Shown piece by piece: positions 1 through 35,023 of a DNA stretch of 64,000 nt. Location: assembly GCA_047495785.1 (NCBI GenBank), contig JBLDXI010000018.1:496001-560000 (forward strand). The letters are read 5' to 3'. Below the pieces are notes generated by a model, which saw only the letters and a program-made list of their open reading frames with translations, was not told the DNA's origin and did not search any database. The position numbers were made by a program, and so were the translations under genes. Position 1 is the first letter of the stretch. Every line of letters begins with the position of its first letter. The stretch is from Lepidodermella squamata. Lineage: Eukaryota; Animalia; Gastrotricha.

Positions 1-1353
1 CGACCCGATAAGCCCCTTCCGCTGAAGCCGCGTGATGGCTCGCGCCGCCCCCCGACCGGGGCACGGGCACGAAGTTTTCAACTGCGGCCGTTTGGCGCGA
101 TGCCGGAAATCGCGCAACCGGGCATCCACGAAAAGCTGGCCTACGCATTCGCCGCCCTCAACCCGCCTGATGTCAGCCGCGTTATCGGTGTCGGCTCCGC
201 AGCCATGTTGACTGCTGCGTTGGCTGGGGACGACGTGTTGGGATGCATCAGGCTGGTCAACACACTCAACGAGCTGTTCGGCCTGAGTCAAGTTGCAGCA
301 GCGCCAGCCGCAGCCGCGCCTGCCGCGGCAGTGCCTGCGCAACCACAAGATCAGCCGCCGCCGCCACCCCCGCCGCCGGCCGCGCCTGCTCCTCCTGCCG
401 CTGCTCAAGGCCCCGTCGTCTTTGCCGCCGCCGCTGCTGCTGCTGCCGCTGCTCCTTCTGCATCTGCGGCGTCGTCTCAAGCCGGTCCTAGCCATCAACA
501 GCTAGGACCATCGAACGCAACTGGTTTGTCGGCCCGTCAGCAGCCACCCAAGCGTACTGCAGGTGGTGAGCCTAAAAAACAACCGGCAAAGCGCGGTAGG
601 AAACCTGCAACAAGCACAACCACAGCAGCACCGGCACCACCGACATCTCAAGCCGCCGCTCAACAACCGTCAACATCTTCGCAGATGCCGCCGCTGCCAC
701 CGTCGACCAGTGCTGCCGCCACTACTGTTGCTGCCGCTGCCGATGCACCTTCGACCAGTGCTGACGACGGCGGAGCTGCTATTGCTGCTGCTGCTGCTAT
801 CGCTTCAAACACAGTGTTGATTGCTCCTGGTTCCTGCGACTTCACCCTGCCGGCATTCGCCAACTTCCTGAAAGCCAATGGCCGCATTACCGCGCTCCGT
901 CTCACAGACAAGGAACAATTCCTATTCAATCAGGTAATTTAACTGTTTTTATTTTACCTTCGCAAATAGTCGTCGATTGTTGATATAGTGTCATTTAACA
1001 TTGTTGTTTTAATGAACATTTTCAGGAAGTGATCTGTCGAGCTGCTCTTTTGGTCACGCGCGAGCGACTGGCTTATAACGTGCCAAACATCATGGGTGCG
1101 ATCGCGGTCTGCGCAGAGGCCGAGCATGGCGTCGCCTTCAGAGACGCCATTCGCAAAAAACTCGAATCCTATAAGCCGGCGGTCGTTAATACCGACAAAG
1201 TTCCGCAGCACGAAGGTGCGACTTTGCGCAAGGTAATTTTGTCGATTTTAAAACATCCCATTTTATTCTAAGCAATGTCTGTTTTTCTAGATCTACGAGG
1301 CCCACCTAAAATCGTTAACCCTTCCGCCCAAAAAATTGAACTTACCAAAGTAA
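1..1353 (+). CDS. RPA70-like OB-fold protein, copy A (5'-truncated by window edge); exons <1-933, 1026-1232, 1291-1353
   Basis: Near-identical to 22857-24212. GT/AG sites give phase-0 joins FLFNQ|EVICR and TLRK|IYEAH...LPK*. AATAAA at 1758-1763. Confidence 0.75.
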
Positions 1354-1837
1354 CTTCTTACTTCTTACTTCTTACTAAATTTTATTCCCTTCCTCACGTC
1401 TTCACGTCTTCCCTTCCTCTTTTCTGTTGTTTCCCGTTATCTCATGTAAATATAGCTCATATCATCTTTGGCCGTTTTGCGCCGTAGTATTAACATAATC
1501 ACAATTACTTCAATCCATCCATTCATCCATCCATACATCCTTCAATCCTTCAATCAACCACAATCACAACTCAATTCCTTTTTATATTGCGCCAAATGCA
1601 TCTTCTGTTCTTCGGATAGCTTTGTATTATTGCTTGAATTATGGTGTATATACTTATATCAATCCTTCTTTACACTGAAATTTTTCTTGATGAAAACACG
1701 TGTGGTACCTATGCGTACGGTATGTGGTATATGATGATGCAATAACTGTTGTAGTACAATAAATAATAATCGCATTTTTCCTAATAATTGTCGTATAATT
1801 TATTCCGTTATTTAGAAATTAAAAGGCTGAGTTTATA

Positions 1838-4416
1838 ATGAGCAATATTGATATAGAGGAAAATACTATCGGTTAGTTTTCGGTTGCTTTACATAGAAAA
1901 CAAATTTGTAATTAATCTTGGAACTTTTTAGAGCCCGTAGCTGCTGCTTCATCTGTTGATTCGCACGAGGCATTTATGAAATGGCTGAAAGGTGACTATT
2001 TGTTTGCATACATATTTTATGACGTCTTATAATATGGTGTTGTCGTTAAATCAGAACCGATGGACGCGGAAGAGATGTCTGAAACAGAGGATATGATCCA
2101 GGCAGCACTCAACTGGCTGTACAGTAAGTTGAACATATTTCTGTTTTCATTTTCAGATAATTATTTTTCCGAAAAGCGCCCGCTGAAGATGTCTCAAAAG
2201 ATGAGCACCTGTTCGAAAATGCTTCGAAAGCTTCAGAAATAGCGCTAATCGCTATCAAACAATACCAATCAGCTGCTCAAGGTAAGAAGTTTCAAGAAAA
2301 TGATGGCATTTTTTGATTGCTTGTTATGATTGTTGTGAAAATAATAATAATAATAATAATAGTATTTAAAATTCGATTTGCGCCATTTCATTCAGGGTCG
2401 TCGACAAACGCCGCCGCTGCCACTGTATCACCATACATCGCGAAGTTGCGGTGGAACACGACGAAGCTGCCGGACGGCAGTCGCGCGTACCTGATCAGCG
2501 TCTTCGGCCTGCGCAACATGCTCGAAGCCGTGCGGCTGCGCCGAACATTGCCGGCTACTTGCGAACGCCTCGTCTGCGTGCCATCGGCGTACCCTCTTCA
2601 GCCGTGCCGGGCAGTGATCGTCATGCGTGACGAACAAGCAGCACGCGCCATGCTCGACCGCGGTGTTCTACTCGTGCCGCCCAGCAACCGCCCGGTCAAT
2701 GTTATGCGGATGACGCCGCTGTCAAGCGACCACCAAGGCCTCTACAACATCTCGTCGCAGGCTTTCGTCGACAAGCTGCTGCCGGCGCAAATAAACCTCG
2801 CCACTGACTTGTTGCCGCTGCGCGAGTTGGCGGAAATGGCTGTCACCGGCCTCGACGCCGTCTCCATCCGCGCGAGCCCGCAGTACCGCTACGCCATCGA
2901 CCGCGCCAAGCGCACCGTGCTGCTGACGAACGTGCCGCTCGGCAAAACCGCCGACGATGTGCGCCAGTACGTGTTGCAGACGGCACCGGCATTATTTCTG
3001 CCGACCGACATCGAGAGCGTTCGCCTGCACAAGAACCAGCGCTCAACTGCGTGCGCCGCCGTCGTCCGCTTGCGCAACGAGGCAATTGCGGGCGAATTCG
3101 TCGATCGGCTCGGCAACGACCGTGTCGCCTTCGGCACGCAGCTGTTCGTCGACCGTGCCGGTGCTGATCGCCAGCTGCAGTCGGCCGATGAAAGGGAGCG
3201 ATGTGCAGTCGACTATGAATCGGCCGTCGACTACACGTTGGCCTATGTGCTCAAGGTTGACCGCCGCGTTACTCGTGCGCAGCTGCAAGCCGCCTACGCC
3301 TTGAGACTAAAACGCTTTAGTCTCAAAGCCTACGCCCAACATCAGGCGCACGATGTGCACGTCGTCCAGCCGCCCGAGGCGCGCTACGCCTTCGTCGCCG
3401 TTCGGTTCGCCACTCGCCAACAGCGCGACGCGTTCTGCCGCGCTCGGCCTCTATCGTACGGCCGCATGGTGGTGGCCGCGTCGTCTTTTCACGAAGCGCG
3501 TCAACAACACGACTTCCACCGCGTGCTGGAGCCGAGCGGCCAGGCGTGGCGGCACCTCGACCCGCGCTCGCCCGTACGTTACGCCGCTCACCTGCAAACC
3601 GGCAGCGACCTGGCGGCTTGGTTCAGCTGCTTTTTCGACGACGGCGAGCAGCCGACTGCTGAAGCGCTCGAAAGGCTACTCGAGATAAATTACACCGGCG
3701 CATTTCGTTCCTCGGCAGAAGCGTACATCAAAGCGCGCTTCACAAATGGCGCCGCTGCGCTGCAACACCTCAGCGCGCAAAGGACAGCTCGTCGCCAGCA
3801 CCCAATTTATAAGAAATTTTTTTGTCCCTTCAGCGTCGATATCATGTCTGTTCGTCACATTCTTAGTTTTCTCGACCCGAATTCACGTGAGCACGGTGAT
3901 CTCATGTTCTGCATTAGGCAAACAGTCCCCGCCAGCAATCGATTCGCTTTCGTCAAGGACCAACTGGCAATAATAGCCAACAATCAACATCTCATGACCC
4001 AGGTTTTTCATCATCGACTCACGGCGTGCTCAACCAACTGCCGCCTGTGTCACGTGCTCACTCCTGATTTCGATTATTTTGTTTCCGACCTCATGACCGT
4101 GCTTGGTTTACAAAAAAATCACTGTCTAGCTCCTAGCACTTACGTAGTTACCGATCTGATCGGCTCTGACCTCCTATATTTAGGCAAGACTAACCGTCCA
4201 CTGAAGCGGCCCATTGATCACATCGGTGACGTAGAACGCCTCGAGCTCAGCCGCACCATCCCTCACTTTTGCTACAAGCACGGTTTTCGCCACCCTCAAT
4301 ACCCTTTCCAAATGAACCTGATAGCTGTTAGCCCCAACGCACACTTTGTCGAACAGACTCTTATCGACGTTTGTTGGGAATTTACCTCGAATTTATCGAG
4401 ATCTGACTGGCGTTAG
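1838..4416 (+). CDS. 3xRRM + Cys-linker + GIY-YIG endonuclease fusion, copy A (~762 aa); exons 1838-1871, 1932-1991, 2055-2123, 2177-2281, 2396-4416
   Basis: All four introns are GT-AG, phase 1 and frame-compatible. RRM-like RNP2/RNP1 segments: VLLTNVP...CAAVVRL, AYVLKVD...RYAFVAVRF, and a weaker YIAKLRWNTT...RAVIVMRDEQAA. C-terminus CSTNCRLC...HC..STYVV...YLGKTNRPLKR..DH...EQTLI...SN matches the GIY-YIG motif order. Confidence 0.8.
3301..3327. mobile_element. 27-bp TIR micro-insertion or excision footprint with 9-bp TSD, in frame
   Basis: TTGAGACTAAA-acgc-TTTAGTCTCAA-a is flanked by GCCTACGCC at 3292-3300 and 3328-3336. It is absent from copy B, which has a single GCCTACGCC. Confidence 0.85.
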
Positions 4417-6357
4417 TTTTTTCTGCTCACGCTAGTCATCGATAAAAATTCTGGTAAATTTTCCATTATTGAAAAATTTAGTAGTTTTCAAAATTCAATT
4501 AAAGTTCGAGCTTTCTTTTGACTCTGACTTGCTTTTGGCTTTTGACTCTGTTTGCGTGTCTTGCAGTAGATTTTATTTCGAAAATTACTGTTATCGTTTG
4601 ATTTTGCCTCGTAATGATTTTGTTCATTTTTTATTGTGTTTGTATATCCTGCAATGTTATTACCATCGAAATTGCTTCATTTTAACAAGAAAATGACTAG
4701 ATAATGTCTCACTGCTTCATTTCCCCTCTCGGTGAACTCCAGATTATTTATCGGGCATCATGTCTCGGGCGTCGTTTGTTATGCGGTCTGAGAAGAAGAA
4801 GAAGAAGAAGAAGTCGTAAAAGCTTGCTATTAATGCAGCCGATGGTAACCGTGTCAGATGGTAAAGTACTCTGTATCATAAATATTGGTAACCATGGTCT
4901 TGAGATAGCAGTACCGGAGGCGTTTCCCAAAACTTTAAACATTGACTTGGTGACCTGAGAGTAGCAAGTTGGAAATAGCGCTTAACCAAAAAATGGCCTA
5001 GGTGCTCGTAATGAAACAAGCCAACGTTGATTGAATCATTTTGTTGATTTTATTTGTTTGATTGATCCGTCAAAACAAAGTAATAAATAGCAATAATAAT
5101 ATTTTTCTTGATTTTCAGCATGAAAATGCGAACTATAGAACATCATATCAAACATCATCGACAGCAGCAGCAGCAGACAAAAAATTAAAAATCTGTATAA
5201 TTGAGTTGATGTACCTATAGTCGAAAGTGTCGATTTCGCGATAATAATCACGTGAATAAGAGAAATTATCATGTACAACGAAACGAAAAAGAAAATCAGC
5301 AGCGCTATAGACTAATCAGAGGACAACAACAAAAACAAATTATTTTTGTTTGATTTTTCGATCCATTATAATTCGATCCATTATAATTCATAAATAACAG
5401 CCGATTGAAGCCATTTAAATGCTAAAAACTATAGTCTTTATAGCCAAATTTCTCAACTTCAGTATTGCACTCTCAACTTCATAATTAAGTGTATAAATGT
5501 CTTAATAAAAGGTAAATTGCTATTTATGAAGTTGGCAGTTCAAAAATAGCGCGGTAAATTGTTTTTTCTCGAGGTTGTTTGTTAATGAGGCGGCTATTAT
5601 TATCCTGGCACTTAGTCATCTCACGCGCACCTGTAAAAAAGATAGGTAGAGCGGTAGAGAGCAGCCAGCACACGAGCAGTAGTTTGAGGCGTCTGCTCTT
5701 CATATTATTCTTCGTGTTATTATTAGTGAGAGAACTTTGACAATAGGCTGTCAAGTTTCTTGCTTCTTGCTGCTGCTGCTTATAATTAAGCGAAGACGCA
5801 GCACGAGTGGTGTAGAGTCGAAAGTCGCGAGTGAACTTCACGTCGTTGGCAAGGTGACGATCGTCGTCGGCATTGCCGTGATTTCGCAGCAGCTTTTGCT
5901 TACAAGCCCCAACCAGGAAGACAGTACAACGACGTCATTATGGCGGGCGGCAATTATTCACCCGCAAGAAATAGGCTGATAATAATGCTACACTAACTAC
6001 AACTAACTCATCAACAAAATGGCTAATACGTTACTTATACACTCGTATTCAAATATATGTCAAAATTAACTGGTCTCCTCTACGTGTTGGCGTGTTATTT
6101 TTGAACATCCATTCGAGACGCGTAGGCTCGGGCAAGAATTTCACACGTAAAGACTTTGTTCACGTCGCGGAAACGAGTATACACCAATAATTTCCTCTCA
6201 TTTCATATCCGTTCTGCTCGGCTTGGCAATGATATACATTTAATTAATCTGTTAGATAATTAAGCAAAGCAAAAATGTGTGAAAATGCGACTACTCAACT
6301 GCTGTTAGTGTGCTGATGATGATGCTGCAGCCTAGCAGCGGCTGATGGCCGGCTCGA

Positions 6358-9300
6358 TTGATAATCATCGGCGCAACCATCACTGCGATCAATTCACCCG
6401 AGATGTCTTATTTTATGATAGAACAGCTCGGCCGCTGCGTTTGGGTCGACAGCGGCCAACTGTCCGACTTTTACGAGGACGGCGGCGAGTACGAGACCCT
6501 GCTGCAGCAGCAGCAACGCTATGATGAGCAGCTCACGGCTGCGGCCAATGACTCCACTGTTACCGTACCATCGACGACAATCGACGCCTACGACATGTTA
6601 GTCGAACACTTAATATACTATAGATGAAACTATTGTAGCTTTGCCCTAATTATAAGGCTTGATTGGAATCTATTAGGAAATGTGATTTGCAGTCTATCGG
6701 AACCTTATCCAGCTTTCAACAGAATTCCGAAGGCTAGAGGGCTTGGAAAGCTATTTTAATCGACCTTCGCTTCAGAGGTTGCCATGAAAATAAAAATGGT
6801 TCTCACTTTTCATTTGTCATAAATTTGGAACCTTTTATTTCCCGTAGACCAACGTTTGACCAACTATTGACCTTTTTTCTTGGGTTCATGTGATCGTTAT
6901 AATTAAATATAGTAAATTTGACAAGGATCGCAATTGGAACCTGCTGGCCAATATTTTGAACGGTCCATTAGCTTCCGACATGCTAAGCCTATCCTATTTA
7001 TGAATGTATTGCCTCAATGGCTATCTTTAGAAGAGGATTCCCTCTCTCCAGGCGCAGCCTCACATTAAGAACCGCTTTCGACCTTAGAAGTTTCCGATTT
7101 CCATGATTCCAAGCTCAAGTTTATTAATGGTCATCATCGGAATTTTCTGTCCAGTCTCCAGTCGCCTTCTGAAAGCTTACGCTTCATTTTTGAAGATTCC
7201 ACGAGCTTAGATTTCTCCGAAAATAGCTTGGGTGCTTTTTAGTAGAAGACTGGACTATTACAGGTTGACGAGCAATCTTCAAAATTCATCCTTATTGGCT
7301 TATTGATCTTTTATTTCCGCTTTATTTCCGCCTATTAACGAACGCTTTTTCAATCGATATAGGATCGTTGAAACTGCGCGGCTTCGATTCGTCGGCTTTC
7401 TCGAGAATGAAGGCATCGGCATGAGCGATGTGGCTCGCAAATTTACCGCAACGTGCCACGAATTCTATCAACAGGTTGTTTTTAACTTGCCCATAAAGTG
7501 TCATAATTGTTTTATACAAAAAACTGGACAGTGCCTATTCGCGGATGCTCAAGTGTGCATGCGAGACGAAATCGCGTCGTGGCGCACCTTTGTGATATAC
7601 GCGCCGTTCGCGCTGCTGCTGATCCTGGTCGCGCTCGTGCTCAACTCGCTGTCGGCGTACTTTGTATCGCGCAACCGTAACAAGTACCCGCGGCACACCA
7701 TCCTGCAGAACCTCGCCCTCAGCGACTCGCTGCTGAGCATCCTCACGCTGATGAAGCGAGGCGTCGACTTTCTGCCCGCGTCGCTAGGCGGGCCGTCGCA
7801 ACTGCCGTGGCTGGCCTTCAACGCCGTTTGGCAGGCGTGCTGGATCGTGTCGGCGCTCGAGGTGCTGTTGCTCAGCCTCGACTGCTTCGTGGCGACACAG
7901 CTGCCGTATTTCTACCGCAGTGCGGGCGCGAGGCGCGGCATCAAAATTGCGATGGCGGTCATATGGCTGGTGGCGATCGGGCTGACGGCGCTGCTGGCGT
8001 ACCTCGGCCTCGCGTACCTCGCCGACGTGCAGTACATTGTTTGCTCACTCATGGTAGTCATTCTCATTGTTGTCGTCGTTGAATGTTTCTACGTATTCAT
8101 GCTCGCTGAGTAAGCCATTAATTTATATAGCTATTATTGGCTCTAAATTGTATTTGAATTCAATTATTATAGGCGAGTTCGACGCCAGCAGCAGCGCTAC
8201 TTCTACGACAACCGAACGCAGATTCGAAAGTTGTCGAAAAACCGCAAGCGAAGCTTTGCGACAATCGCCATGGTCATGGCTTGGTAAATTTTTTAAACAC
8301 TCTACTTACTTGCAGAGTTTAACTAATTTTTCATTCAGCACTTTCATTTGCTGGCTGCCACTGCTGATATATTTTCTATTGCCGGAAGAAATTCACGCGA
8401 ATAACCTTCAAGTCTCACACCAGCTGTAAGTTATTGAACCAACTCTTTTAATTCGAGGCCGGGATTTTTTGCGGAATGAATCGGCTCAGTCGCACTCCCA
8501 GCTATTTTTAGCTCCAATAATGATGCGCAACGCGGACAAACATGAGAGACCATCATGTAAAATAGGTTGATTAATTTTAAGTTCTAATTTTAAGGTTCGT
8601 TCATAATAAGAAGCTACAGAGTTGGTATCCAACAGATTTGTTTTAGCGAACAATGTATTTATTTTGAAAAGTTGAATATTAGACTCCGGCCCCAGGTGGG
8701 CTTATATGGCGCATCAAACACATGTAAATTGTTGTTATGCGTCTTCATTTTCAAGTCTCCGCACATGTTTTTCCAGAACTTTCCCATCTCCAACATAAGA
8801 TATATGCATTCCTGGTTTTTTTAGATAACTCGTATGAATTTATTCATAGCCGTCAGACGTATGCAGCCGGCGTATTTATAGAACTCACGTGAAAACTTAT
8901 TATAATGCTGAGTCTTTTTTAAACAATAACAAAAAAACACGCCTCGTCTCGCACGCGCGCGAGCTACGAAATAAACATCTTTTTTATTAATTACTTCAGG
9001 TGTTTTCTTAAAACCAGTTGGTAAAAAGTAGCCCCGGAGATGAACTGCATTCAACTAATAGCTTTTTGGGCAAAGGAATGCTTATCAGCGATGCGTAGAA
9101 TCTCGCTGTTAAAAAGTGTAACAATTAAATTTAAATGATATTTTCGGACATGGTTTATATTATATTTATACCCCTGTAGTTGAGAATTGTAATAGGGAAG
9201 TTGAGAAATCTTTGGCCAAAAACCCATACTGCCACCGAAATGCCACCTAGGGCCACCGGGGTCCTATGGCTAGGACCTCGGCAGACTCCTTTGGCAGCAT

Positions 9301-13755: not shown

Positions 13756-16401
13756 ATGGCGGCTACGACTACGGCAGCCGAGTCGGTTTCGCGATCGCCG
13801 CCCTCCGCCGCCTCGTCGTCCTGCGTGTCGCCAACCGCAAGTGCCAACGGAGGCAGCGGGACCCTCCTCAAGAAGCCACTCGCGTTGAACGCGCCGTCGT
13901 CTGGTCTGCTAGATAGCAGCAGCCTGTTGATGCACGCGGCGGCGTCGATGCCTGGCGTCGAGCCGTTCGGCGGCATCGGCGATTTGGGCCCGCAGCAAAT
14001 GCTACTGCAACTGCAGCTTCAACAGCTGCTTCAACAGCAGCAGCAACAGCAACAGCATCAGAACAACCACCACCAGCAAATGTTTCTGAACCAGTTCCTG
14101 CTAGGCAACGCCATGGCCAGCCCGGCTCAGTTGCTGGCAGCAGCCGTTGCGGCGTCTTCGTCGGCGGCAGCTTCGGCGCTTCCGAACCGGTCGAGCATGA
14201 CCATGGGTGGCGGCGGCGGCAAATCGTCGGAATCTCGCCTGCTGATGCCGTCGTCATTGGGCCTGGGCAGCGGCGGCGGCGGCAACAACAACAGCAGCAG
14301 TGGCGGCATCGTGGCGCCGGGCGGCACCGGCGTGGCGCTCAAGTGCCGGCTGGCGGACTACAAGGGCAAGAAAATCGCCGCCTTCGACATCGAGGGCGCG
14401 TGCTACCTGTGCCTGCCGCAGGCCTACGAGGTGTTCCTGCGCGACTACGTCGGCGGCCTGCACACCGTCTACACGAAGCTGAAGCGTCTCGGCATCACGC
14501 CGCTCGTCTGCACTGTCGAACACGTAAGCAGCATCACCCAAGTTTCACTATACTTTTCTAGGGCTAAACTTCTGTTTGTTTGAGACACTTTCTAGTTGAG
14601 AAATTCTAACGTTGAACTCTAGAACGGTTCGAAAATCACCTTATCGATTTTTTTAGTGATTGATTATCGATTATCGATTTTATGCAAACTTTTCCGATTG
14701 GGTTTTCTTTGAAAAAATGTCACGCGAAATAAAACCCATTTTGTTATATTAGGTTCGTCTGCTGCGCGGCCTTGGAGCCATTCAGCCGGGCGTCAATCGC
14801 TGCAAGTTGCTGGCAACTCACGATTTCGACGTGCTCTACGACGACTGCACCCGAACAAAGTAACGCAACTTTTTAAATCCAAGTTCTTTCTTCTAAATTT
14901 CGAATTCGTATTATTTTTAACAGCGCTCGCCCTGGCCGTCCACCGAAGCGTATTGGCGGCGGGTACGGCGGCTTCGGTACCGGAACCGGGTCCGGCTACG
15001 GCGACGACGACGATGAAGGCGCGAGTGACGATGGCGACCTCGATGACAGCCATCATCATCAGCACCACCACCGCCGGTTTTCGCTGGGCCCGGACGGCGA
15101 CGACCAGTTGCCGCTGCCGCCGGTGCCGTCATCGCTGGAGCAGGCGATGCAGCACAGCGAGCGGCTGAACAGTCTGTTGGCACTGAGCCAACTGCAGCAG
15201 CAGCAGCACAAAACGCCTATCGCGGGCGGCGCCGCCTTCGACCACTTGATTGCCATGAACCAACAGCAGCACCGGCTGTTCCAACACCAGCAGCAGCAGC
15301 AGCAGATGCCGCCGCCGACGGCGCCACGGCCGGTTGAGCCGACGTCGTCTCTTCTCGCCTCGCTGGCTGCACTTGCCCAGCAGCAGCAGCAGCAGCAACA
15401 AACGCCTTCATCGCTAGACAACAGCAGTCTGCTGCAGCTTGATCATCACAATCATCACCAACATTTCAGCAAGGACCTGCGCCGGCCTTCGCAAGACAAC
15501 GCGTTTTTAGACGCAGCTAGTAATGGCCATGATTTGCTGGGCTTCGCGACTCAGCAACTTTTGGCCGCCAGTCGAAATGCGGCCAAGTTGCAGCAACAGC
15601 CACCGCCTTCAGCAACAGCAGCAGCCATGATGACTGCTCACCAGCAGCAGCAGCAGCAGTCTGTAATTGCGAACAGCCATCGCAACAGCTCGAATTCGAC
15701 GTCATCGTCGTCGTCGGCTGCCCTGATGACAGCGGCCAAGTTGATGCTGCAGCAGTTGCAGAACCAGCAGCAGCAGCAGCACGGACAGCCGGACGCGTCG
15801 CTAGCTGGGCTGGTCGCGAGGCTGGAAGCTGCTCGAAACTCTTCCCTTAGCAGTAGCAACAACACTACGAGTAATAAACACGCGTTGAAGCGAACTTCGA
15901 CTGCCGCGTCGTCGTCGTCATCGTCGCCCGAGTCCAGAGCGCAGTCGCCTGGCAACAACAACAACAACAACCGAAGTTCGCCTCTGCAGCAGCAGCAGCG
16001 TGGTGATGAAACTGAGCCGTTATCTGAGCAGAAACGCCAAAGGTGAGTGTGTGACATGCGACAAAAAATTACAATTCAATTTTAATATTTCGAATATTCA
16101 GTTTTTTCAATTAAAACTGAAAATTAAAATCGAACTTATTCCAAGTCTTAAATGTACGCTGTGTTGCAGACTTAGTAGTGATCCGGCGCTGGATTTGACG
16201 TTGGAAACGCCGAAGCCGTGCCTGTTGGGCCATGACGCGGCTATCAAAGCGCGCCTCGTCGAGCTGGAAGCGCAACGCCTGCGGCTGGAACGCGAGCTCG
16301 AACAACTGAGTAATGTCAGCAGCAACAACAATGGCAACAACGGCAACAATGGATTGCATGCTGGTGTCGACAACGCGACGCCTATTGATGCTGCCGATTA
16401 G
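13756..16401 (+). CDS. dac: Dachshund (Ski/Sno/Dac domain transcription cofactor); exons 13756-14523, 14753-14859, 14924-16042, 16170-16401
   Basis: DACH box-N: YKGKKIAAF...LCLPQAYEVFL...GGLHTVYTKLKRLGITPLVCTVEH|VRLLRGLGAIQPGVNRCKLL...RPGRPPKR. Short C-terminal coiled coil. AATAAA at 16555-16560. Confidence 0.95.
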
Positions 16402-17414: not shown

Positions 17415-20376
17415 TTAGCCGACTGACACCTGAGATGGTTGTGTTCTCGGCCGGCGTAACTGATGCGCAACAGCGTCGACAGGGCGGCAAACAGCAAAAC
17501 CACAACTTTCAACTACCTGAAACAATTTGCTTCTTGGTTTTTCACTGAATTCACTGAGAGTCAATGCAAACATAGCACTGTTCTTGGCAAGTCTACCCTT
17601 CAAGGTATGTTTCTTCAATAGTTTCTTCAACTCGTAACTCGTAAGCTAGGTTGGCTAGGTAATGAAAATAAGTATTTTAAATAGCGACAATTTACATCGA
17701 TTACTTAATTTTTATCTAGCACTCATTGACTTTGTAAACAGTTGTAGCTTCAAGAGTTTTTAAATATTGATGCTGGAAAACAAAGCCGTATTACAAGCAG
17801 CCGAAAACTGCAGATAATGTTACTAGACTGGATATGTTTGATGTGTGATAGAGAGCGCGAGATTTACTTCTTCAAAGAGATCTTCGAATTCACATTGTGG
17901 CATCATTGGGGTCCAATTTCCCAACCATCACAACTCTTGCATGGTCGCAGCTTCTGCGTTTGTTACACTACGAATTAGCTAGTTGCACACATGAACAACC
18001 TCGAGTAAATTGAGATTTGGCAACAGGCGCTTCTTAAAATATAATGAGCTAGATGAACTAGTGCTGGGCCCACGTTACGCGCTTCAAACGCTTCAAGCGA
18101 AAACGACGGGATTTTGTGCCAAGTAATAGTCAGGTAGTCTACAACATCGTACTATGTGACGACGCGACGCGGTACAAGTACTTCCATTGAGTCGCGCAAT
18201 GGACAGTTTCGACCGACGCGATTTATCCTGTTATCCAAATCGGCGCATCCGTCGGCATCCGATACCTGAGTGTTGTAAAGGGTATCCTTGTATAATTCCT
18301 CTAGACTGCTACTGATATGAAATTCGACGACGAGTTAGTGTCGGGCCTACATTACGCAGCCTCAAAGACGACGGGATTTTGTGCCAAGTGTATATTAAAT
18401 TTTCGGAAACTTGAACGGCCAGGCGAGACCACATTTGTTCTAGAGCTATCACTTGTTGAAATCGATGTCTGATTTGTTATCGCTCTTTTCAATTTGTTTT
18501 ACATCAGCTTTGAGATGTTAGGTTTTGATGTTGCGTAATCGAAAGCGGTGGACATGCTCGAGTCCCAGAATCGCTTATCAGCTTTAAATTTCCAATTTCT
18601 TCCGTCTTACAATCATAAATCACTAAGGCTAAAAGTGGTGTTACTCGAGCCAACAGTGTTACAAACAGTGGTTAAGGCAGCCGTTATTAATAATCTATTA
18701 GATTCTTGTTAAAGTTTGTAGCAGGATGGGAATGTGCTGTGCAAAGTCAGAGCCATCATGTTAAAAACGCCCATCTCAAAATAAGGACGATTTTGAGCAG
18801 CAGGCTACCAGTAAAGCAGGCTCCGTGAAAGTAGGACTTGCGTAAGTGAGAACTGTATCGCTTATCGTGAGCTTGTGTTCTTGAAGTTGACGACGACAGT
18901 TATTAGATCTTTGCGAGGTTCCATTGATTTCATCTGATATATGTCTACTCTGATAAATGACATGTTTTTCATCTGTTTGCTAGTTTTCTTTACTGCCAAC
19001 ATTAGCAGCGAATTTCCGTTTTGTAGCGGCGATAATGGCAAGCTTTTCAGCACCATTCAGGTCTAAATCAAAGTTGTTTCCGGAATGAACTGTTATATTT
19101 CATCGCAGCTGTTTTGTTGTTGTCTTGCTGTATTTTGAGAATTTTCACTGGAATGAACTAGACAACGCAAACATATAGCTTATCACCCTCACATTTTAAC
19201 TGAAGCTTTACGCTTTTTGTTTGGCAGCTGCAGTTAACGAATTGGCGGATATAAAATTGGCGTTTGAGATAGATGCGTAAATAGTTAGTTATTAGGCCAT
19301 ATACCAGTGGTTACCGTAATTGTATGCTTTGTAATTATTAAAAGTGTTCAATTCTTTTTAGACTCAAACCCACTGTGACGACGCTTTGAGGAAAGCAATG
19401 CGCCCGCTCCTTCACAACTCGCCTCTACTTGATCTACACCAGCAGCAGCAGCAGCAACAGCGGTAGTACTAGATGCCGGTCAACGGGCTCAACGACAAGC
19501 CAACGCTATTCTGGTTCACGAGGAAAAATTGGAGGTTCAACCCGAAGAAGAAGAAGCATTTTCATTGCGTGAAGTGTCATCTCACGCCTTCAGCTGGCCT
19601 TTTTCACAAGTGTTGCAACGGTGCTAGTTGTCCCGAGAAGCAAATTTGAAAAAAACATGCAAATTGTGCAATTCTCTGTTTCAAATTGTCACTGTTTCAC
19701 GCGCGCCTTTGATTGCCTTGTTACTTCTCCAGATTATTTTATGTTTTGATTACATCATAAAGTCGGAACGGTTCTTCTGTGTTGAGCCGCGGATTCGTGT
19801 TATTCTCTCATAATAAAAACCGTGTGAACTTTTAAAAGTGGCGCCTGTTGTTTTTGAGTTGTTCTTGCACATTTGGTTATTATAGCGCGAGTTCGGATGT
19901 GCTGGTGACGAAGGAGCATCAGGTTGTTGCTGAAATCACCCACACAGCTGATAATTTATCTTATGCTAAACTCGCACGGTTCAACAACTTCATCAACTTT
20001 TCAACTAGCCGACGCCGCAGGTGACAGCTTTTTTTCATTTCTTCATTCTGTTTTTCACATAATTTATTGTGCAAAAAGTGATTTGAAATACATACAAGAG
20101 TGACCTATTTTACCGAAGCCGATACTATTGTTTGACCTGAAAGAGATGCGACAGGTGGGCAGTAAAATTGTCGATGGCCGCAATAAATCAATGTGAAATG
20201 CGAGAAAGGTCGGATGGTGGCAAGGTGGATAACTACGCCTTTGGCAAGATGTTGACCTAATGAGCACTAATTGCTGTTGTACCACGCTCAAGACATATAC
20301 ACTTCGGGTCAGTTGGGTCATGGTGATTGTTGATGATTTCGAAGCCACTCAGGGTTATGATAGTTGTTGCAAGCAT
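17415..20376 (-). pseudogene. Probable decayed, distant paralog of the OB-fold gene on the minus strand
   Basis: Stop-riddled segments in collinear order: IITLSGFEII (~20360; cf. VITINNFFI), SLLMLAVKKTSK (~19000; cf. ALLKRAVEDTVK), LAKNSAMFALTLSE (~17570; cf. LKANGRITALRLTD). Similarity is weak. Confidence 0.4.
18052..18760 (+). pseudogene. Three decayed fragments of the 5' end of the OB-fold gene (~18052-18265, ~18298-18435, ~18722-18760)
   Basis: CTCTAGACTGCTACTGATATGAAATTCGACGA matches 21491-21522. VYNIVLCDDA and WTVSTDAIYPVIQIG match 21509 ff. QDGNVLCKVRAI resembles EEGEILCQVRGI. Frameshifts and stops are present. Confidence 0.85.
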
Positions 20377-21508: not shown

Positions 21509-23276
21509 ATGAAATTTGACGAATTGAAGCCGGGCCGATATTACGCCTTCGAAGAAGGCGAGATCTTGTGCCAAGTTAGAGGCATATCAGATTTTAGGAA
21601 ACTCGAACGGCCGGGCGACCACACGCACGTCTATAACATCGTGCTGTGTGACGACGCGGCGCGGGCCGAGTGCTGCCTTCCAGCCGAGCGCTGGACAGTT
21701 GCCACCGACGCAGTATACCCAGTAATTCAAATCGGCGACATGGTGTGTATCCGATGCTTCGCTGTCAATGGGAGCGTAATCCGCACTTACGTGCTGGAGC
21801 CCTTCCTCCCGGACGTGCCGTCAATGACAATGGTGGCTGGTGGCCTGAGCGACCCCGAGAGTCGGATGTCACTGGAGCTCAAGACTGCCAATTCGCTTCA
21901 ATGGAGAAGCAGCCTCGAGAGGGCAATTCATCTGCAGCCGCTTGATTTCGCGCGCTATGCCGATGTTTACGGCTTTCGCTGGGTGTCGGAGGGCGAGTTG
22001 GAGGTGAACGTGAACATCCTCGGCCAGGTGACTCGCTTCACCGAGATAGGCGCCCACAAGTTCACAAATTGCCTCGGCAAGGAGCGTGTTGTTGAACAAG
22101 CCGATCTTGTCGTTAGGTTCGGTGGCTTCGAACGTGCCCGTATGTTCAACTTGCCATTTTAATCAAGGAAATAGAATATGCTTTTATTATTTAAAATACC
22201 CGATTATTTAGATTTCCATCTTCAATCTCTATATTCACTGTAAGGCCTCACTTTACAGGCTACGCGCGCGTTCCCATTGGCCGGCTTTTTTCGCGCATAC
22301 TGGAGAAGCGCGCGCTAATAACAGCCAAGTTGATGTTTCCCGAAAAAATTTGCGCATTTCTATTTTTTTTGCAATCTTTTGCAAAATTGGAGCGAGTGAC
22401 CTCACGCGAACACGCCACATCATGTAATCATGCGCGTGCCATGACACAGGCTCACTTCATTTTGGTGTAAACTTCGGCGTAAAATTCCTAGCTTGAGTTT
22501 TGTTTTCAGTAAAAATGAAACTGCAAATGTCCTAATTTTTGGCGAGGTGTTGCTAATTAAGAACTTGTGAGGGCTGAAATTGTAAAATAGAATAGGATAA
22601 GAACAAACGCGGTAACATCAATTAATTCCATGTTTATTTTTCAGCAATGCGCATATACGGCGACAAGGAGTGTGCCCTGCTCAAGCGGGCAGTTGAGGAT
22701 ACCGTCAAGATGGGCCTGCCGCTGTGGGTTTACATCGCCCAAGCGCTCGTTCGGCAAGACCTGAGCTTATCGACTTGTGGCCGCACTATGTTCGCGTTCA
22801 GCAACTCGCGATTGGGACATCTTGTCGCTGGTTTCGACGACAACTTCCAGTTCCGCCGACCCGATAAGCCCGTTCCGCTGAAGCCGCGTGATGGCTCGCG
22901 CCGCCCCCCGACCGGGGCACGGGCGCCTAGTTTTCAGCTGAAGCCGTTTGGCGCGATGCCGGAAATCGCGCAACCGGGCATCCACGAAAAGCTGGCCTTC
23001 GCATTCGCCGCCCTCAACCCGCCTGATGTCAGCCGCGTTATCGGTGTCGGCTCCGCGGCCATGTTGACTGCTGCGTTGTCTGGGGACGACGTGATTGGAT
23101 GCGTCAGGCTGGTCAACACACTCAACGAGCTGTTCGGCCTGAGTCAAGTTGCAGCAGTAGCAACAGCACAGCCAGCCGCGGCAGTGCCTGCGCAACCACA
23201 AGATCAGCCGCCGCCGCCACCCCCGCCGCCGGCCGCGCCTGCTCCTCCTGCCGCTGCTCAAGGCCCCGTCGTCTTT

Positions 23277-23311
<35 letters not shown>

Positions 23312-24212
23312 TACTGCTGCTGCTGCTGCTGCCGCTGCTCCTTCTGCATCTGCGGCGTCGTCTCAAGCCGGCCCTAGCCATCAACAGCCAGGACCATCGA
23401 ACGCAACTATTCAGCAGCCACAGAAGCGTACTGCAGGTGGTGAGCCTAAAAAACAAGCGGCAAAGCGCGGTAGGAAACCTGCAACAAGCACAACCACAGC
23501 AGCATCGGCACCACCGACATCTCAAGCCGCAGCTCAACAACCGTCAACATCATCACAGATGCCGCCGCTGCCACCGTCGACCAGTGCTGCCGCCGCTGCC
23601 GATGCACCTTCGACCAGTGCTGACGACGGCGGAGCTGCTATTGCTGCTGCTGCTGCTATCGCTTCAAACACAGTGTTGATTGCTCCCGGCTCTTGTGATT
23701 TTAGCCTGCCGGCATTCGCCAACTTCCTGAAAGCCAATGGCCGCATTACCGCGCTCCGTCTCACAGACAAGGAACAATTCCTATTCAATCAGGTAATTTA
23801 ACTGTTTTTATTTTACCTTCGCAAATAGTCGTCGATTGTTGATATAGTGTCATTTAACATTGTTGTTTTAATGAACATTTTCAGGAAGTGATCTGTCGAG
23901 CTGCTCTTTTGGTCACGCGCGAGCGACTGGCTTATAACGTGCCAAACATCATGGGTGCGATCGCGGTCTGCGCAGAGGCCGAGCATGGCGTCGCCTTCAG
24001 AGACGCCATTCGCAAAAAACTCGAATCTTATAAGCCGGCGGTCGTTAATACCGACAAAGTTCCGCAGCACGAAGGTGCGACTTTGCGCAAGGTAATTTTG
24101 TCGATTTGAAAACATCCCATTTTATTCTAAGCAATGTCTGTTTTTCTAGATCTACGAGGCCCACCTAAAATCGTTAACCCTTCCGCCCAAAAAATTGAAC
24201 TTGCCAAAGTAA
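21509..24212 (+). CDS. RPA70-like tandem OB-fold protein with Ala/Pro linker and C-terminal domain, copy B (~682 aa); exons 21509-22139, 22645-23792, 23885-24091, 24150-24212
   Basis: CQVRGISDFRKL...VYNIVLCDD...VYPVIQIGDMVCI resembles RPA70 DBD-A. VNILGQVTRF...ADLVV...|PMRIYGDKE...LSLSTCGRT resembles DBD-B. Splice phases are compatible. Upstream non-coding exons are possible. Confidence 0.7.
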
Positions 24213-27200
24213 CTTCTTACTTCTTACTTCTTACTAAATTTTCTTCCCTTCCTCACGTCTTCACGTCTTCCCTTCCGCTTTTCTGTTGTTTCCCGTTATC
24301 TCATGTAAATATAGCTCATATCATCTTTGGCCGTTTTGCGCCGTAATATTAACACAATCACAATTCCTTCAATCCACCCATCCATCCATCCATACATCCT
24401 TCAATCCTTCAATCACAACTCAATTCCTTTTTATATTGCGCCAAATACATCTTCTGTTCTTCGGATAGCTTTGTATTATTGCTCGAATTATGCTGTATAT
24501 ACTTATATCAATCCTTCTTTACACTAAAATTGTTCTTGATGAAAACGCGTGTGGTACCTATGCGGTCGGTATGTGGCATGATGATGCAATAACTGTTGTA
24601 GTACAATAAATAATAATCGCATTTTTCCTAATAATTGTCGTATAATTTCCATTATTTAGAAATTAATAGGCTGAGTTTATAATGAGCAATATTGATATAG
24701 AGGAAGATACTATCGGTTAGTTTTCGGTTAACTCTACATAGAAAACAATTTTGTAATTAATCTTGGAACTTTTTAGAGCCCGTAGCTGCTGCTTCATCTG
24801 TTGATTCGCACGAGGCATTTATGAAATGGCTGAAAGGTGACGATTTGTTTGCATACATATTTTATGACGTCTTATAATATGGTATGTTGTCGTTAAATCA
24901 GAACCGATGGACGCGGAAGAGATGTCTGAAACAGAGGATATGATCCAGGCAGCACTCAACTGGCTGTACAGTAAGTTCAACATATTTCTGTTTTCATTTT
25001 CAGATAATTATTTTTCCGAAAAGTGCCCGCTGAAGATGTCTCAAAAGATGAGCACCTGTTCGAAAATGCTTCGAAAGCTTCAGAAATAGCGCTAATCGCT
25101 ATCAAACAATACCAATCAGCTGCTCAAGGTAAGAAGTTTCAAAAAAATGATGGCATTTTTTGATTGCTTGTTATGATTGTTGTGAATATAATAATAATAA
25201 TAATAGTATTTAAAATTCGATTTGCGCCATTTCATTCAGGGTCGTCGACAAGCGCCGCCGCTGCCACTGTATCACCATACATCGCGAAGTTGCGGTGGAA
25301 CACGACGAAGCTGCCGGACGGCAGTCGCGCGTACCTGATCAGCGTCTTCGGCCTGCGCAACATGCTCGAAGCCGTGCGGCTGCGCCGAACATTGCCGGCT
25401 ACTTGCGAACGCCTCGTCTGTGTGCCATCGGCGTACCCTCTTCAGCCGTGCCGGGCGGTGATCGTCATGCGTGACGAACAAGCAGCACGCGCCATGCTCG
25501 ACCGCGGTGTTCTACTCGTGCCGCCCAGCAACCGCCCGGTCAATGTTATGCGGATGACGCCGCTGTCAAGCGACCACCAAGGCCTCTACAACATCTCGTC
25601 GCAGGCTTTCGTCGACAAGCTGCTGCCGGCGCAAATAAACCTCGCCACTGACTTGTTGCCGCTGCGCGAGTTGGCGGAAATGGCTGTCACCGGCCTCGAC
25701 GCCGTCTCCATCCGCGCGAGCCCGCAGTACCGCTACGCCATCGACCGCGCCAAGCGCACCGTGCTGCTGACGAACGTGCCGCTCGGCAAAACCGCCGACG
25801 ATGTGCGCCAGTACGTGTTGCAGACGGCACCGGCATTATTTCTGCCGACCGACATCGAGAGCGTTCGCCTGCACAAGAACCAGCGCTCAACTGCGTGCGC
25901 CGCCGTCGTCCGCTTGCGCAACGAGGCAATTGCGGGCGAATTCGTCGATCGGCTCGGCAACGACCGTGTCGCCTTCGGCACGCAGCTGTTCGTCGACCGT
26001 GCCGGTGCTGATCGCCAGCTGCAGTCGGCCGATGAAAGGGAACGATGTGCAGTCGACTATGAATCGGCCGTCGACTACACGTTGGCCTATGTGCTGAAGG
26101 TCGACCGCCGCGTTACTCGTGCGCAGCTGCAAGCCGCCTACGCCCAACATCAGGCGCACGATGTGCACGTCGTCCAGCCGCCCGAGGCGCGCTACGCCTT
26201 CGTCGCCGTTCGGTTCGCCACTCACCAACAGCGCGACGCGTTCTGCCGCGCTCGCCCTCTATCATACGGCCGCATGGTGGTGGCCGCGTCGTCTTTCCAC
26301 GAAGCGCGTCAACAACACGACTTCCACCGCGTGCTGGAGCCGAGCGGCCAGGCGTGGCGTCACCTCGACCCGCGCTCGCCCGTTCGTTACGCCGCTCACC
26401 TGCAAACCGGCAGCGACCTGGCGGCTTGGTTCAGCTGCTTTTTCGACGACGGCGAGCAACCGACTGCAGAAGCGCTCGAGAGGCTACTCGAGATAAATTA
26501 CACCGGCGCATTTCGTTCCTCAGCAGAAGCGTACATCAAAGCGCGCTTCACGAACGGCGCCGCTGCGCTGCAACACCTCAGCGCGCAAAGGACAGCTCGT
26601 CGCCAGCACCCAATTTATAAGAAATTTTTTTGTCCCTTCAGCGTCGATATCATGTCTGTTCGTCACATTCTTAGTTTTCTCGACCCGAATTCACGTGAGC
26701 ACGGTGATCTCATGTTCTGCATTAGGCAAACAGTCCCCGCCAGCAATCGCTTCGCTTTCGTCAAGGACCAACTAGCAATAATGGCCAACAATCAACATCT
26801 CATGAGCCAGGTTTATCATCATCGACTCACGGCGTGCTCAACCAACTGCCGCCTGTGCCACGTGCTCACTCCTGATTTCGATTATTTTGTTTCCGACCTC
26901 ATGACCGTGCTTGGTTTACAAAAAAATCACTGTCTAGCTCCTAGCACTTACGTAGTTACCGATCTGATCGGCTCTGACCTCCTATATTTAGGCAAGACTA
27001 ACCGTCCACTGAAGCGCCCCACTGATCACATTGGTGACGTAGAGCGCCTCGACCTCAGCCGCACCATCCCTCACTTTTGCTACAAGCACGGTTTTCGCCA
27101 CCCTCAATACCCTTTCCAAATGAACCTGTTAGCTGTTAGCCCCAACGCACACTTCGTCGAACAGACTCTTATCGACGTTTGTTGGGAATTTACCTCGAAT

Positions 27201-27367
27201 TTATCGAGATATGACTGGCGTTAGTTATTCCTGCTCACGCTACTTGATATAAAAATTCTGGTAAAATTTTGCATTCAAAATTATTTTTTCAAAACTCAAT
27301 TAAGTAATTAGACGAGCTGTCTTTTGACTCTGGCTTTTGACTCTTACGTGTCTGTGTGCCTTGCAGT
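22857..27367 (+). repeat. Copy B of the duplicated cassette (left boundary not definable in this window)
   Basis: Direct alignment with 1-4567. Confidence 0.95.
24682..27224 (+). CDS. 3xRRM + Cys-linker + GIY-YIG endonuclease fusion, copy B (~750 aa); exons 24682-24715, 24777-24836, 24902-24970, 25024-25128, 25240-27224
   Basis: Same exon structure and motifs as copy A. ORF is open and the differences are mostly synonymous. Confidence 0.8.
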
Positions 27368-29071
27368 TGATCTCGGTGATCTCCTGATTACTCATCGTTA
27401 ATCAAGTCTGAAAATCGCCGTTTATTGTTCTGCGGTCTGGCTAGGCTATATACCCATAGAATTTCTTTTAATTTATGTGCCAAAATGAATTAATTGAGCG
27501 ATGCTGAGAAATTTTATCAGAATTTTATTATACCTAAGATGGATGTTATGATTTTCTGAATAATTGTTAATCTTAAATATTTCTGAAACATATGGAAAAA
27601 TCATCTCGATCGTGGTTAATTTGAAGTTAATATCTGAAATAAGCTGACTTTCGCTTTGGCTGACTATCTTTTCTAAGCCTCTCCTCTCAAATATCGTGAA
27701 TTGGATGACAAATGTAATCGAGTTGCCTCCTGTATTAACCTTCCGGCTAAATATTTGTGTGTAAATTTATACCATCAAGCCATTTAAACTATATCGCTCG
27801 GTTGATATATACATGATATATACATGTATTGGTTTGCGATTCCATTTTACATTTCCGCTTCAATTGCTAGTGGCAGGATTCAAGAATGACAACGATGTAA
27901 CAACAACGAATTATGAATTTATGAATGTCTAAAGCACCATATTCATCGGTGTGTGCTGGCCTCGTAACAAGCCGAGAATTATCACCGTTTCTAGATTCGA
28001 AAAATATTTATAACATCATTTTCACGATTATTCTATTCTGTCATCGTTGCAATAAATCTTACACGGAGAGTGTTTTCAATCCTTCAATTTTTTGTCAAGT
28101 CGCGGATAATCGATAATCACATTATTTTTTCGTAAAGAAATGGCGTTACATGTGACTGGTTGCTCATTGAGTCGCGCTGATTTCGGTTGATTGATTAGAT
28201 TCAATATGAAGTAGGATAAGAAATATTGAAAATGATAGCGTGATCCATTTTACACTTGATCCATTGATTTTTAATATTGCCTTCGACTTGAAACACACAG
28301 GACAGGCGAGAAAAGTAATTGACCATGACCGCTATAAATCAATCTGAAAACATTCATTCAATGTAAAAATCTGACCTTCCGGACTCAGAGGTAAGTGAGA
28401 ACTTGTCCGTGTTAGGTTTCGACTAAATTTAATCGGCCTTGAATAAAATAGTAGGTACTTATACCGACCGCAATGTGTAATCCGCGCACTCGTCCACTCG
28501 CCTTTTGACGCGAAAGGCCTCATTTGAAAAAAAAACAGCCAATGTAAAATCGCCCCGTTTTATTTCAATTTTGCTACTGAGGTGTCACAGGATTATCGCA
28601 TTTCGAGCTTACAAGGAATTGAGTGTCACGTCGCTGAACTGGGCCACGTGGACCGTCACAACACCCTTTTCTCTACATCATAGCTTAGTTTGAGCAACCT
28701 TTTGTTTAGGGTGTGGTGTCATGTAATTAGATGTGCAACCGATGCGAACGTCAAATTGATTGATACCTACTTATTTAAAAAATATTTACTTCCCACGGGC
28801 CCACCAGCGGGGCGCCCATTTGTGAAGGGCAGCGGTTGCGCAACACGGGCGGCTTTGTTAGCAGGTGCCCGGGTGCGTACTCATTTATTTAAACCTTGGA
28901 GGAGTAGTTTAAACTGGGGGGCCGTATTCTATTCAAGGATTAGAAACCATTACTCCAAGATTTGACTGTAATGCGTTAAACATTCGTAAGTAGTAAGTTA
29001 CATGTTTATTTTATACCATTTACTATACAACTCATCTTTATTATCTTTCATCAGCTTGCTCCAGGTATACT

Positions 29072-33709: not shown

Positions 33710-35023
33710 ATGACAGATAAGTCGAGCCGTTCCATTTTTGGTGAGAGATGAAGACTTTGATTGATGAAACTAAATTTTACTCAATTTTGCTTTCTTGTTC
33801 AGTCGGAAACATTCCTTACGAAGCGACGGAGGAACAGCTGCGTGATATCTTTGTTCAAGCTGGCCCGATTATCGCATTCAGACTGGTGTACGACAGAGAA
33901 ACTGGTAAACCCAAAGGCTACGGTTTCTGCGAATATCAAGGTATTCCTGCTCGTATGTTTCTTGGCGATCTTTATCTACTGATATGTTATAGATGCTGAA
34001 ACTGCTCAGAGTGCTATTCGTAATTTGTCGAACGTTGAAATCAACGGTCGCAATCTGCGCATTGGTTTCGCTTCGGGTGAACAGACACACCAAGCTATCG
34101 ATTCATTTCAAGGTTACATCCAGCCTGACACTGAACGAATTCATGGCGACCCTGTTGAGCCGGAACGAGCCCCTGAAGCTATCAGCCGAGCCGTTGCATC
34201 CCTCCCTCCAGAGCAGATGTATGAACTGATGAAGCAAATGAAAGTTTGCATTCAGAACAATCCAAACGAGGCGCGTAACATGCTGCTGCAAAACCCCCAG
34301 CTGGCCTACGCGTTACTACAAGCTCAAATAATTATGAAAATCGTCGACCCTCAAGTTGCAATGAGTTTGCTGCACCGTCCTCGCGATACCCCGGTTGTGC
34401 CGTTGCAGCCACCGGCCGCTCCTCCTGGAGCCGCTGGAATGAACCCGTACGCACCGGCTCCACAGGCCATGGTCCCGCAACAGCCGATGGGCATTCCGCC
34501 TCAAGTCATTCCCCCACCGATGCCGGTTCAGACTAATGGCATCGTGCCCCAACAGCCACCCGTGCAGCCACCGCCGGCACCGGTCGTCGCACCAGTGCCA
34601 GCAGCGCCTCAATCTGCTCAACCGCCTCGTCTGGTCGACCCGCGCATGATGCGCAACCAGTCGCAGTCGGGCGCCCCGCCACCGCCCGTCGCACCAGCTC
34701 CGATGCCAGCTGCACCGGCTCCTCAGGCCGCGCCTGTTTTACCATCCCTGGGTGCAATGGGCGCCAGCGGTGGAGGCGCTGCTGCTGACCAGGAGCGAAA
34801 TCAGCTCATTATGCAGGTGAGTAAAGCAGTGATATAATTGCGAAAAGTTTTTAAAAGTAGAATTCATAATGAAATTGATCGGCGTAATAGAATGTTAAAA
34901 CGTGTGTTTCTTTCGTTTTAGGTGTTGAGTTTGCGCCCGGAACAAATCGAAATGCTGCCGCCGGACCAGCGCCAGTCGATTCTGTTGCTCAAGGAACAAA
35001 TCAGCAAAAACATGGCTTTCTGA
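33710..35023 (+). CDS. CSTF2: Cleavage stimulation factor 64 kDa subunit; exons 33710-33740, 33803-33940, 33993-34816, 34922-35023
   Basis: [20 protein letters not shown]...[14 protein letters not shown], hinge [26 protein letters not shown]-terminal [31 protein letters not shown]. Confidence 0.97.

Follow-up and report, generated by a model that had tools for sequence, protein, structure and literature searches.

Can an animal gene carry a GIY-YIG nuclease that is joined to RRM-like modules and to no reverse transcriptase (RT)? To our knowledge, GIY-YIG nucleases of animals are confined to a few settings, namely SLX1, ANKLE1, the organellar homing enzymes and the endonuclease fused to the RT of Penelope-like elements (PLEs). 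The question is raised by a gene of Lepidodermella squamata found at 24682-27224 of the window, the stretch of 64,000 nt analysed here (contig JBLDXI010000018.1 of assembly GCA_047495785.1, positions 496,001-560,000, forward strand), to which all coordinates refer. The original prediction, made from the letters of this stretch, had described the product of the gene as three RRMs followed by an apparently complete Penelope-type GIY-YIG domain. Our analysis suggests that the gene is intact and lineage-restricted, and that it encodes a very divergent GIY-YIG domain of the homing-endonuclease/Penelope supercluster together with RRM-like modules; we put the probability of this whole reading at about 0.55. 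Overall, the protein is a probable, moderately supported new architecture of a known kind of nuclease.

The locus is an intact gene present in two copies

The gene, referred to as copy B, begins with an ATG at 24682 and is predicted to have five exons (24682-24715, 24777-24836, 24902-24970, 25024-25128 and 25240-27224), through all of which the frame remains open, yielding a protein of 750 amino acids. A second copy of the same gene, copy A, begins at the counterpart ATG and extends over 1838-4416. Both copies, the duplicated block to which they belong and all parts of the protein located below are on the forward strand. An open reading frame (ORF) in two copies had been predicted at these positions, and this was borne out: the stop-free frame spans 25164-27224 in copy B and 2317-4416 in copy A, about 2 kb each, and the ATG at 24682 opens a plausible five-exon model. 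All predicted introns have GT..AG borders, are short (53-111 nt) and AT-rich, and their splice sites are kept in both copies. Insertions and deletions between the copies were confined to non-exon sequence in the five-exon comparison.

Synonymous changes number 23 and non-synonymous ones 9 among the 661 codons of the last exon that were aligned between copies A and B, corresponding to a dN/dS of 0.12. The constraint was uneven, the ratio being about 0.04 for codons 1-504 and about 0.37 for codons 505-661, which correspond to the putative nuclease (p 0.015 by Fisher's test, with small counts). None of the differences between the copies touched a residue of the nuclease motif described below. Because of the low dN/dS, the open frames of about 2 kb in both copies, the conserved splice sites and the location of the indels outside the exons, we conclude with high confidence, as far as sequence can tell, that the locus is a real, intact and lineage-restricted protein-coding gene with at least two copies.

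The C-terminal domain is collinear with I-TevI-like nucleases

The putative GIY-YIG nuclease core lies at 26940-27221 and is collinear with I-TevI-like nucleases. Its candidate catalytic residues, numbered like all residues in this text according to the last-exon translation, are Y571 (26949), Y583 (26985), G585, R593 (27015), H597 (27027), E641 (27159) and N654 (27198). The references were I-TevI of T4 and diverse phage relatives, with 14 sequences in the alignment used for the global profile (A5) and 15 in the local hidden Markov model (HMM) and the MAFFT alignment. The columns that are invariant in A5 (Y6, I8, Y17, G19, R27, H31 and E75) and the nearly invariant N90 all have counterparts in the protein. 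Y571 and Y583 are 12 residues apart, the family criterion being 10-12, and G585 follows the second tyrosine. R593 and H597 are found at +10 and +14 from this second tyrosine, as are R27 and H31 of I-TevI; E641, the putative metal-binding Glu, in the sequence EQTLI, aligns with E75 (consensus EQxYI), and the spacing of +44 from His to Glu is that of I-TevI. N654 occurs 13 residues after E641, compared with 15 in I-TevI, and in the MAFFT alignment it occupies a column a few positions before N90, not that of N90 itself. This alignment, which comprised the C-terminal 96 residues, was collinear over the full domain: TYVV was paired with GIY, LYLG with YVG, KHG with KHG and EQTLI with EQxYI, with a hydrophobic third strand.

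These similarities were compared with what shuffled and unrelated sequences produce. Shuffling the protein 20,000 times produced the catalytic pattern, built from the invariant columns with loose spacing, 5 times. A six-frame translation of the whole window contains it in the two copies only, and 67 kb of T4 in I-TevI only. Scored globally against the profile, the last ~125 amino acids gave -7.8 compared with -39.5 ± 6.4 for shuffled sequences, the observed score being reached by 2 shuffles out of 24,000. It was also better than the scores of all control windows (154/154), which were taken from real ORFs of T4 and of the present window; of three genuine GIY-YIG proteins of T4, SegF and I-TevII scored below it and SegA above it. 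The local HMM, a custom I-TevI-like profile, yielded 5.6 bits (reached by 2/5000 shuffles), and BLASTP aligned the protein to I-TevI with an E-value of 0.033. When a language-model atlas was queried with residues 520-662, GIY-YIG clusters accounted for 33 of the top 100 matches, the best at 0.91.

The strings CSTNCRLC, STYVV, LYLGKTNRPLKRPxDH, VEQTLI and SNL, which had first drawn attention to the domain, are present in both copies. The claim of a GIY-YIG nuclease is favoured by the collinearity, the catalytic residues and the atlas features, but it found no echo in any curated profile library. Taking these sequence features together, we consider the GIY-YIG assignment quite probable.

Relationship to the endonuclease of Penelope-like elements

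Just upstream of the core, at 26835-26858, is a Cys cluster of the form C-x3-C-x2-C (C533, C537 and C540, in CSTNCRLC), directly followed by a His. It is the sole match to CX2-5CxxC in the protein and is located 31 residues ahead of the GIY tyrosine; in a fixed window of 60 amino acids upstream of GIY, the motif arose in 27 of 20,000 shuffles. PLE endonucleases of the Neptune, Nematis and Naiad clades carry a CX2-5CxxC motif in their upstream linker (PMC8557442). Canonical PLE endonucleases are further characterized by a highly conserved CCHH motif, of which the two cysteines fall between GIY and YIG (PMC8557442). In the present protein, the stretch between the two tyrosines (VVTDLIGSDLL) contains no Cys. 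No RVT match was found in the ORF with Pfam, and the atlas features of the N-terminal part pointed to RRM families, not to RT. That the N-terminal part contains a degenerate RT was considered and rejected, given these RRM families and the strong constraint (dN/dS ~0.04).

Since the CCHH motif is absent, the ORF contains no RT and there is neither a hammerhead nor an RT nearby, the core is not, by these features, a canonical PLE endonuclease. The designation 'Penelope-type' is therefore justified as far as the CX3CX2C motif of the linker is concerned, which is in place, but not with respect to the CCHH cysteines, the RT and the hammerhead. By analogy with the endonucleases of Hydra and Chlamys, which also lack CCHH (PMC8557442), the core may still be related to the PLE endonuclease.

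RRM-like modules are suggested upstream of the nuclease

Three modules and a spacer were delineated ahead of the Cys cluster. Module 1 (25314-25568, residues 26-110) displays a partial alpha-beta-beta-alpha order in a low-confidence model and has no profile match. Module 2 (25740-26012, residues 168-258) contains VLLTNVP, which resembles RNP2 devoid of its aromatic residue. Module 3 (26064-26306, residues 276-356) is the most canonical one: its RNP1 position reads YAFV and its beta1 contains a Tyr, at positions that are aliphatic in modules 1 and 2. The middle region that follows (26307-26828, residues 357-530) is predicted to be helical and was matched in none of the searches. Modules 1 and 2 have in common the pattern C[RA]AV[IV]..R[DN]E.A....[LV]DR, which is beta3-alpha2-like; their Smith-Waterman score was reached by 5 of 1000 shuffles.

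For residues 20-355, the only named families returned by the atlas were RRM_1 (33 matches), PARP14-type RRMs, RRM_2 and NID, with scores of 0.79-0.84, which are rated as leads only. AlphaFold modelled residues 283-350, in module 3, with the order beta-alpha-beta-beta-alpha-beta at a pLDDT of 55-63. With this model, Foldseek found many RRMs at a probability of 0.97-1.0 but with E-values of 0.07-0.3, and VIA-align gave Z-scores of 7.2-8.3 to RRMs and equally to the PII, ACT and papillomavirus E2 folds. As modelled, module 3 shows the match pattern of a generic ferredoxin-like sandwich. Of the three RRMs initially proposed, what can be retained is that RRM-like modules are suggested by the atlas and by the model of module 3; a count of three RRMs is unsupported. 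'RRM-like modules' is a fair label for the N-terminal two thirds of the protein, and an only suggestive one. The data suggest that the place held by the RT in PLEs is taken here by RRM-like, ferredoxin-like modules, two or three in number, and by a helical spacer.

Alignment of the copies revealed an in-frame insertion of 36 nt that is present in copy A only (3292-3327), where it adds 12 residues to module 3 and leaves the frame intact. A perfect palindrome of 27 nt (TTGAGACTAAA-ACGC-TTTAGTCTCAA plus A), flanked by a 9-bp duplication of GCCTACGCC, makes up the insertion, which has the appearance of either a very small inserted foldback element or a footprint left by excision. The inserted letters recur in a contig of the DNA run X1.

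The base composition of the gene had been taken as a sign of chimeric origin. The drop in GC is real, from 0.62-0.68 (25300-26500) to 0.46-0.52 (26600-27200). However, the GC content at third codon positions (GC3) of three parts of the gene (0.78, 0.61 and 0.56) lies inside the range of the other genes of the window (0.54-0.87). The GC drop is therefore no evidence of a chimeric origin, and the idea of compositional chimerism was rejected.

Points that weigh against the proposed architecture

Several results argue against a GIY-YIG nuclease carrying RRM-like modules. All curated profile libraries were blank even at E ≤ 10: Pfam returned no RRM and no GIY-YIG, whether queried with the whole protein or with six pieces of it, and NCBIfam and PHROGs gave zero matches for the protein. 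Sequence searches of the PDB with both halves retrieved nothing relevant, the RRM part being blank by phmmer. No relative was found by an exhaustive phmmer search of 1.84 billion representative proteins, by two word-based homology searches (one with the whole protein, one with the C-terminal domain), by tblastn against 50,697 phage records or in scans of metagenome and viral contigs. AlphaFold, run with no alignment, gave a pLDDT of 38 for the last exon and of 37.6 for the C-terminal 158 amino acids; both models are unreliable and the C-terminal one had no structural match.

Other points concern the features of the protein itself. H40, nearly invariant in the I-TevI family, is not matched in the protein, and hhalign gave only P 0.053, over 30 columns. 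The segment had been picked beforehand for its motif, and the per-window probabilities of ~1e-4 have to be set against ~1000 six-frame windows. Selective constraint is weaker on the putative nuclease than on the rest of the last exon (omega 0.37 versus 0.04). The aromatic RNP residues are absent from modules 1 and 2, and module 3 fits PII, ACT and E2 as well as it does RRMs. No transcript was found, the sole public run with sequence of the gene being a DNA run of 2024 with contigs that keep the introns.

The original prediction had proposed a comparison with the Pfam profiles RRM_1 and GIY-YIG as its own check, and had named the lack of a significant profile or structure match as refuting it; the comparison was blank, and at that level the claim fails. 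An architecture already described was another of its grounds for refutation. A text search found no RRM-GIY-YIG fusion, and none is included in the 2006 survey of the superfamily (PMC1564403). A divergent GIY-YIG domain of this kind escapes Pfam, NCBIfam, PHROGs and phmmer, and automatic annotation would label the protein an 'uncharacterised orphan'.

Surroundings of the gene and duplicated block

The window is of animal type, with GC-rich exons, AT-rich introns and Pfam matches to a rhodopsin-type receptor (exon at 7421-8113), a Ski/Dachshund domain (exon at 13756-14583) and a CstF2 hinge (exon at 34025-34837). Ordinary host genes surround the two copies, which places the locus in gene-rich euchromatin rather than in a transposon graveyard.

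Self-BLAST indicated that copy B belongs to a block (22857-27371) that is duplicated at 1-4571 of the window with 95% identity and comprises the 3' part of an upstream orphan gene and the nuclease-candidate gene. The block measures at least 4.5 kb, its left edge being out of view, as copy A extends past the first position of the window. The two copies are 22.8 kb apart, with unrelated genes in between. A tandem duplication of 22.8 kb was rejected, since the part shared in self-BLAST amounts to just 4.5 kb, and tblastn disclosed no third paralogue within the window. No poly-A tail, terminal inverted repeats, long terminal repeats (LTRs) or long direct repeats were found at the visible right boundary of the block; a transposon bounded by terminal repeats was rejected on this account. 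An Rfam scan of the window gave no family at threshold, hammerhead ribozymes included. There was no RT-sized ORF in or near the block, and the ORFs scanned there gave no match to an RT or transposase family.

The upstream co-duplicated gene (21509-23801; 1-942 for copy A) contains two long ORFs and an Ala/Pro/Ser-rich low-complexity stretch, and was blank in Pfam and PDB sequence searches. Between its two long ORFs, a contig of run X1 has 38 other letters in place of 22233-22585, indicating a variant form in that sample. The spacer that separates this gene from the nuclease candidate contains, at 24363-24414, a small array of degenerate repeats of 8 nt (TCCATCCA / TCCTTCAA), at which contigs of the DNA run break. 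A direct repeat of 68 nt with 72% identity (20131-20198 and 28282-28349) flanks copy B outside the block common to copy A, and is probably an unrelated dispersed repeat.

Discussion

The systems closest to the present protein are the I-TevI-type homing endonucleases of phages and organelles, with which it has in common a C-terminal Asn and the distances that separate Y, Y-G, R, H and E. The logic may be common too, i.e. a nuclease of low specificity tethered to a separate nucleic-acid binding part. In contrast with these enzymes, the order of the domains is reversed, the nuclease being C-terminal; NUMOD and helix-turn-helix modules are absent, as is H40; the gene is a nuclear, intron-containing gene of an animal; and the similarity is far under curated thresholds. 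The endonuclease of PLEs (CDD cd10442; Neptune, Nematis and Naiad) resembles it by the C-terminal position of GIY-YIG behind a CX2-5CxxC linker and by the residues R, H, E and N (PMC8557442), but the present gene has no CCHH, no RT in its ORF, no hammerhead and no pseudo-long terminal repeat (pLTR). In rotifer Terminons, a GIY-YIG endonuclease is likewise encoded apart from the RT (PMC6431247, PMC8557442). Unlike the Terminon endonucleases, which keep both CX2-5CxxC and CCHH and belong to giant telomeric elements, the present one is interstitial, is fused to RRM-like modules and lacks CCHH.

Two other groups of proteins offer partial parallels. The ORF1 proteins of Jockey-like non-LTR elements have several non-canonical RRMs, of a kind that may escape ordinary profiles, followed by Cys knuckles, an arrangement like that of the present gene, in analogy only (PMC3905857), and their RRM modules are thought to bind the RNA of the element itself (PMC3905857); these proteins differ in having no nuclease and in that their knuckles are CCHC. 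SLX1 and ANKLE1/LEM-3 are also nuclear-encoded GIY-YIG nucleases of animals with accessory domains. SLX1, however, has a RING finger and no C-terminal Asn, and ANKLE1 combines a LEM domain with ankyrin repeats (PMC1564403), whereas the present protein has the Asn and gave no Pfam match to RING, ankyrin or LEM.

We propose that the nuclease is descended from a GIY-YIG endonuclease of a mobile element and was joined to modules binding single-stranded nucleic acid. Such modules would tether a catalytic domain of low specificity, much as the DNA-binding domain does in I-TevI and the RT in PLEs, and the protein would nick DNA beside the RNA or single-stranded DNA to which it is bound. A more specific version, in which the protein would be a trans-acting integration factor for endonuclease-less PLEs, the RRM-like modules binding the RNA of the element and the GIY-YIG domain nicking chromosomal DNA to prime reverse transcription, appears very improbable to us. 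If true, a retroelement would here rely on an endonuclease that is encoded separately from the RT and tethered by way of RNA.

Could the GIY-YIG-like string instead be fortuitous, picked from 128,000 translated residues that were scanned for known motifs, in an orphan protein with no nuclease domain? This would account for the blank results of the curated HMM libraries, of the PDB sequence search and of the exhaustive phmmer search, for the hhalign P of 0.053 and for the uninformative structure predictions; atlas scores near 0.9 are, moreover, obtained with 4-10% of shuffled proteins. Yet a coincidence would have to bring together partly independent features in a single C-terminal stretch of 130 amino acids: seven aligned invariant residues with the spacing of I-TevI, a collinearity over the whole domain that 2 of 24,000 shuffles equal, a score above those of the genuine family members SegF and I-TevII, a Penelope-type Cys motif just upstream, and an atlas that returned GIY-YIG out of many possible Pfam families. 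We regard a chance motif as unlikely. That the ORF is the remnant of a dying retroelement, i.e. a decayed PLE with an RT degenerated past recognition, might be supposed from the position of the linker and the endonuclease at the C terminus of an ORF of ~750 amino acids, as in endonuclease-bearing PLEs (PMC8557442). A dN/dS of ~0.04 over the N-terminal 504 codons is, however, the opposite of decay, and the N-terminal atlas features lead to RRM families and not to RT. The QG and DD dipeptides, 289 residues apart, are outside the context of RT motifs; no hammerhead ribozyme or pLTR was found and the CCHH motif is absent. Decay of a PLE is in our view exceedingly improbable.

The remaining alternative agrees with the proposed architecture on the identity of the protein and differs on whose interest it serves: the gene and the upstream orphan gene would form an uncharacterised selfish or mobile cassette, with the GIY-YIG domain as its own endonuclease. 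That the two genes were duplicated together, in a block measuring 4.5 kb or more, with the copies 22.8 kb apart and unrelated genes in between, is what such a cassette could produce; mobile elements typically carry GIY-YIG domains among animals' and other genomes' known holders of this fold (PMC1564403), and stand-alone GIY-YIG endonucleases exist in rotifer Terminons (PMC6431247). But terminal inverted repeats, LTRs and a poly-A tail are all missing from the visible right edge of the block, the window contains no hammerhead or other Rfam match, and no RT or transposase is found in or near the block. The two copies, the only verified ones, are explicable by an ordinary segmental duplication, and strong purifying selection fits a host gene equally well. 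We hold the cassette to be rather unlikely.

If the reading of a divergent GIY-YIG nuclease with RRM-like modules is correct, a selected, intact and multi-copy gene that joins these parts without an RT would constitute a new architecture. The gene might have arisen by domestication of a mobile-element nuclease, or it might belong to a selfish cassette so far unrecognised, and it could bear on how endonuclease-deficient PLEs integrate away from chromosome ends.

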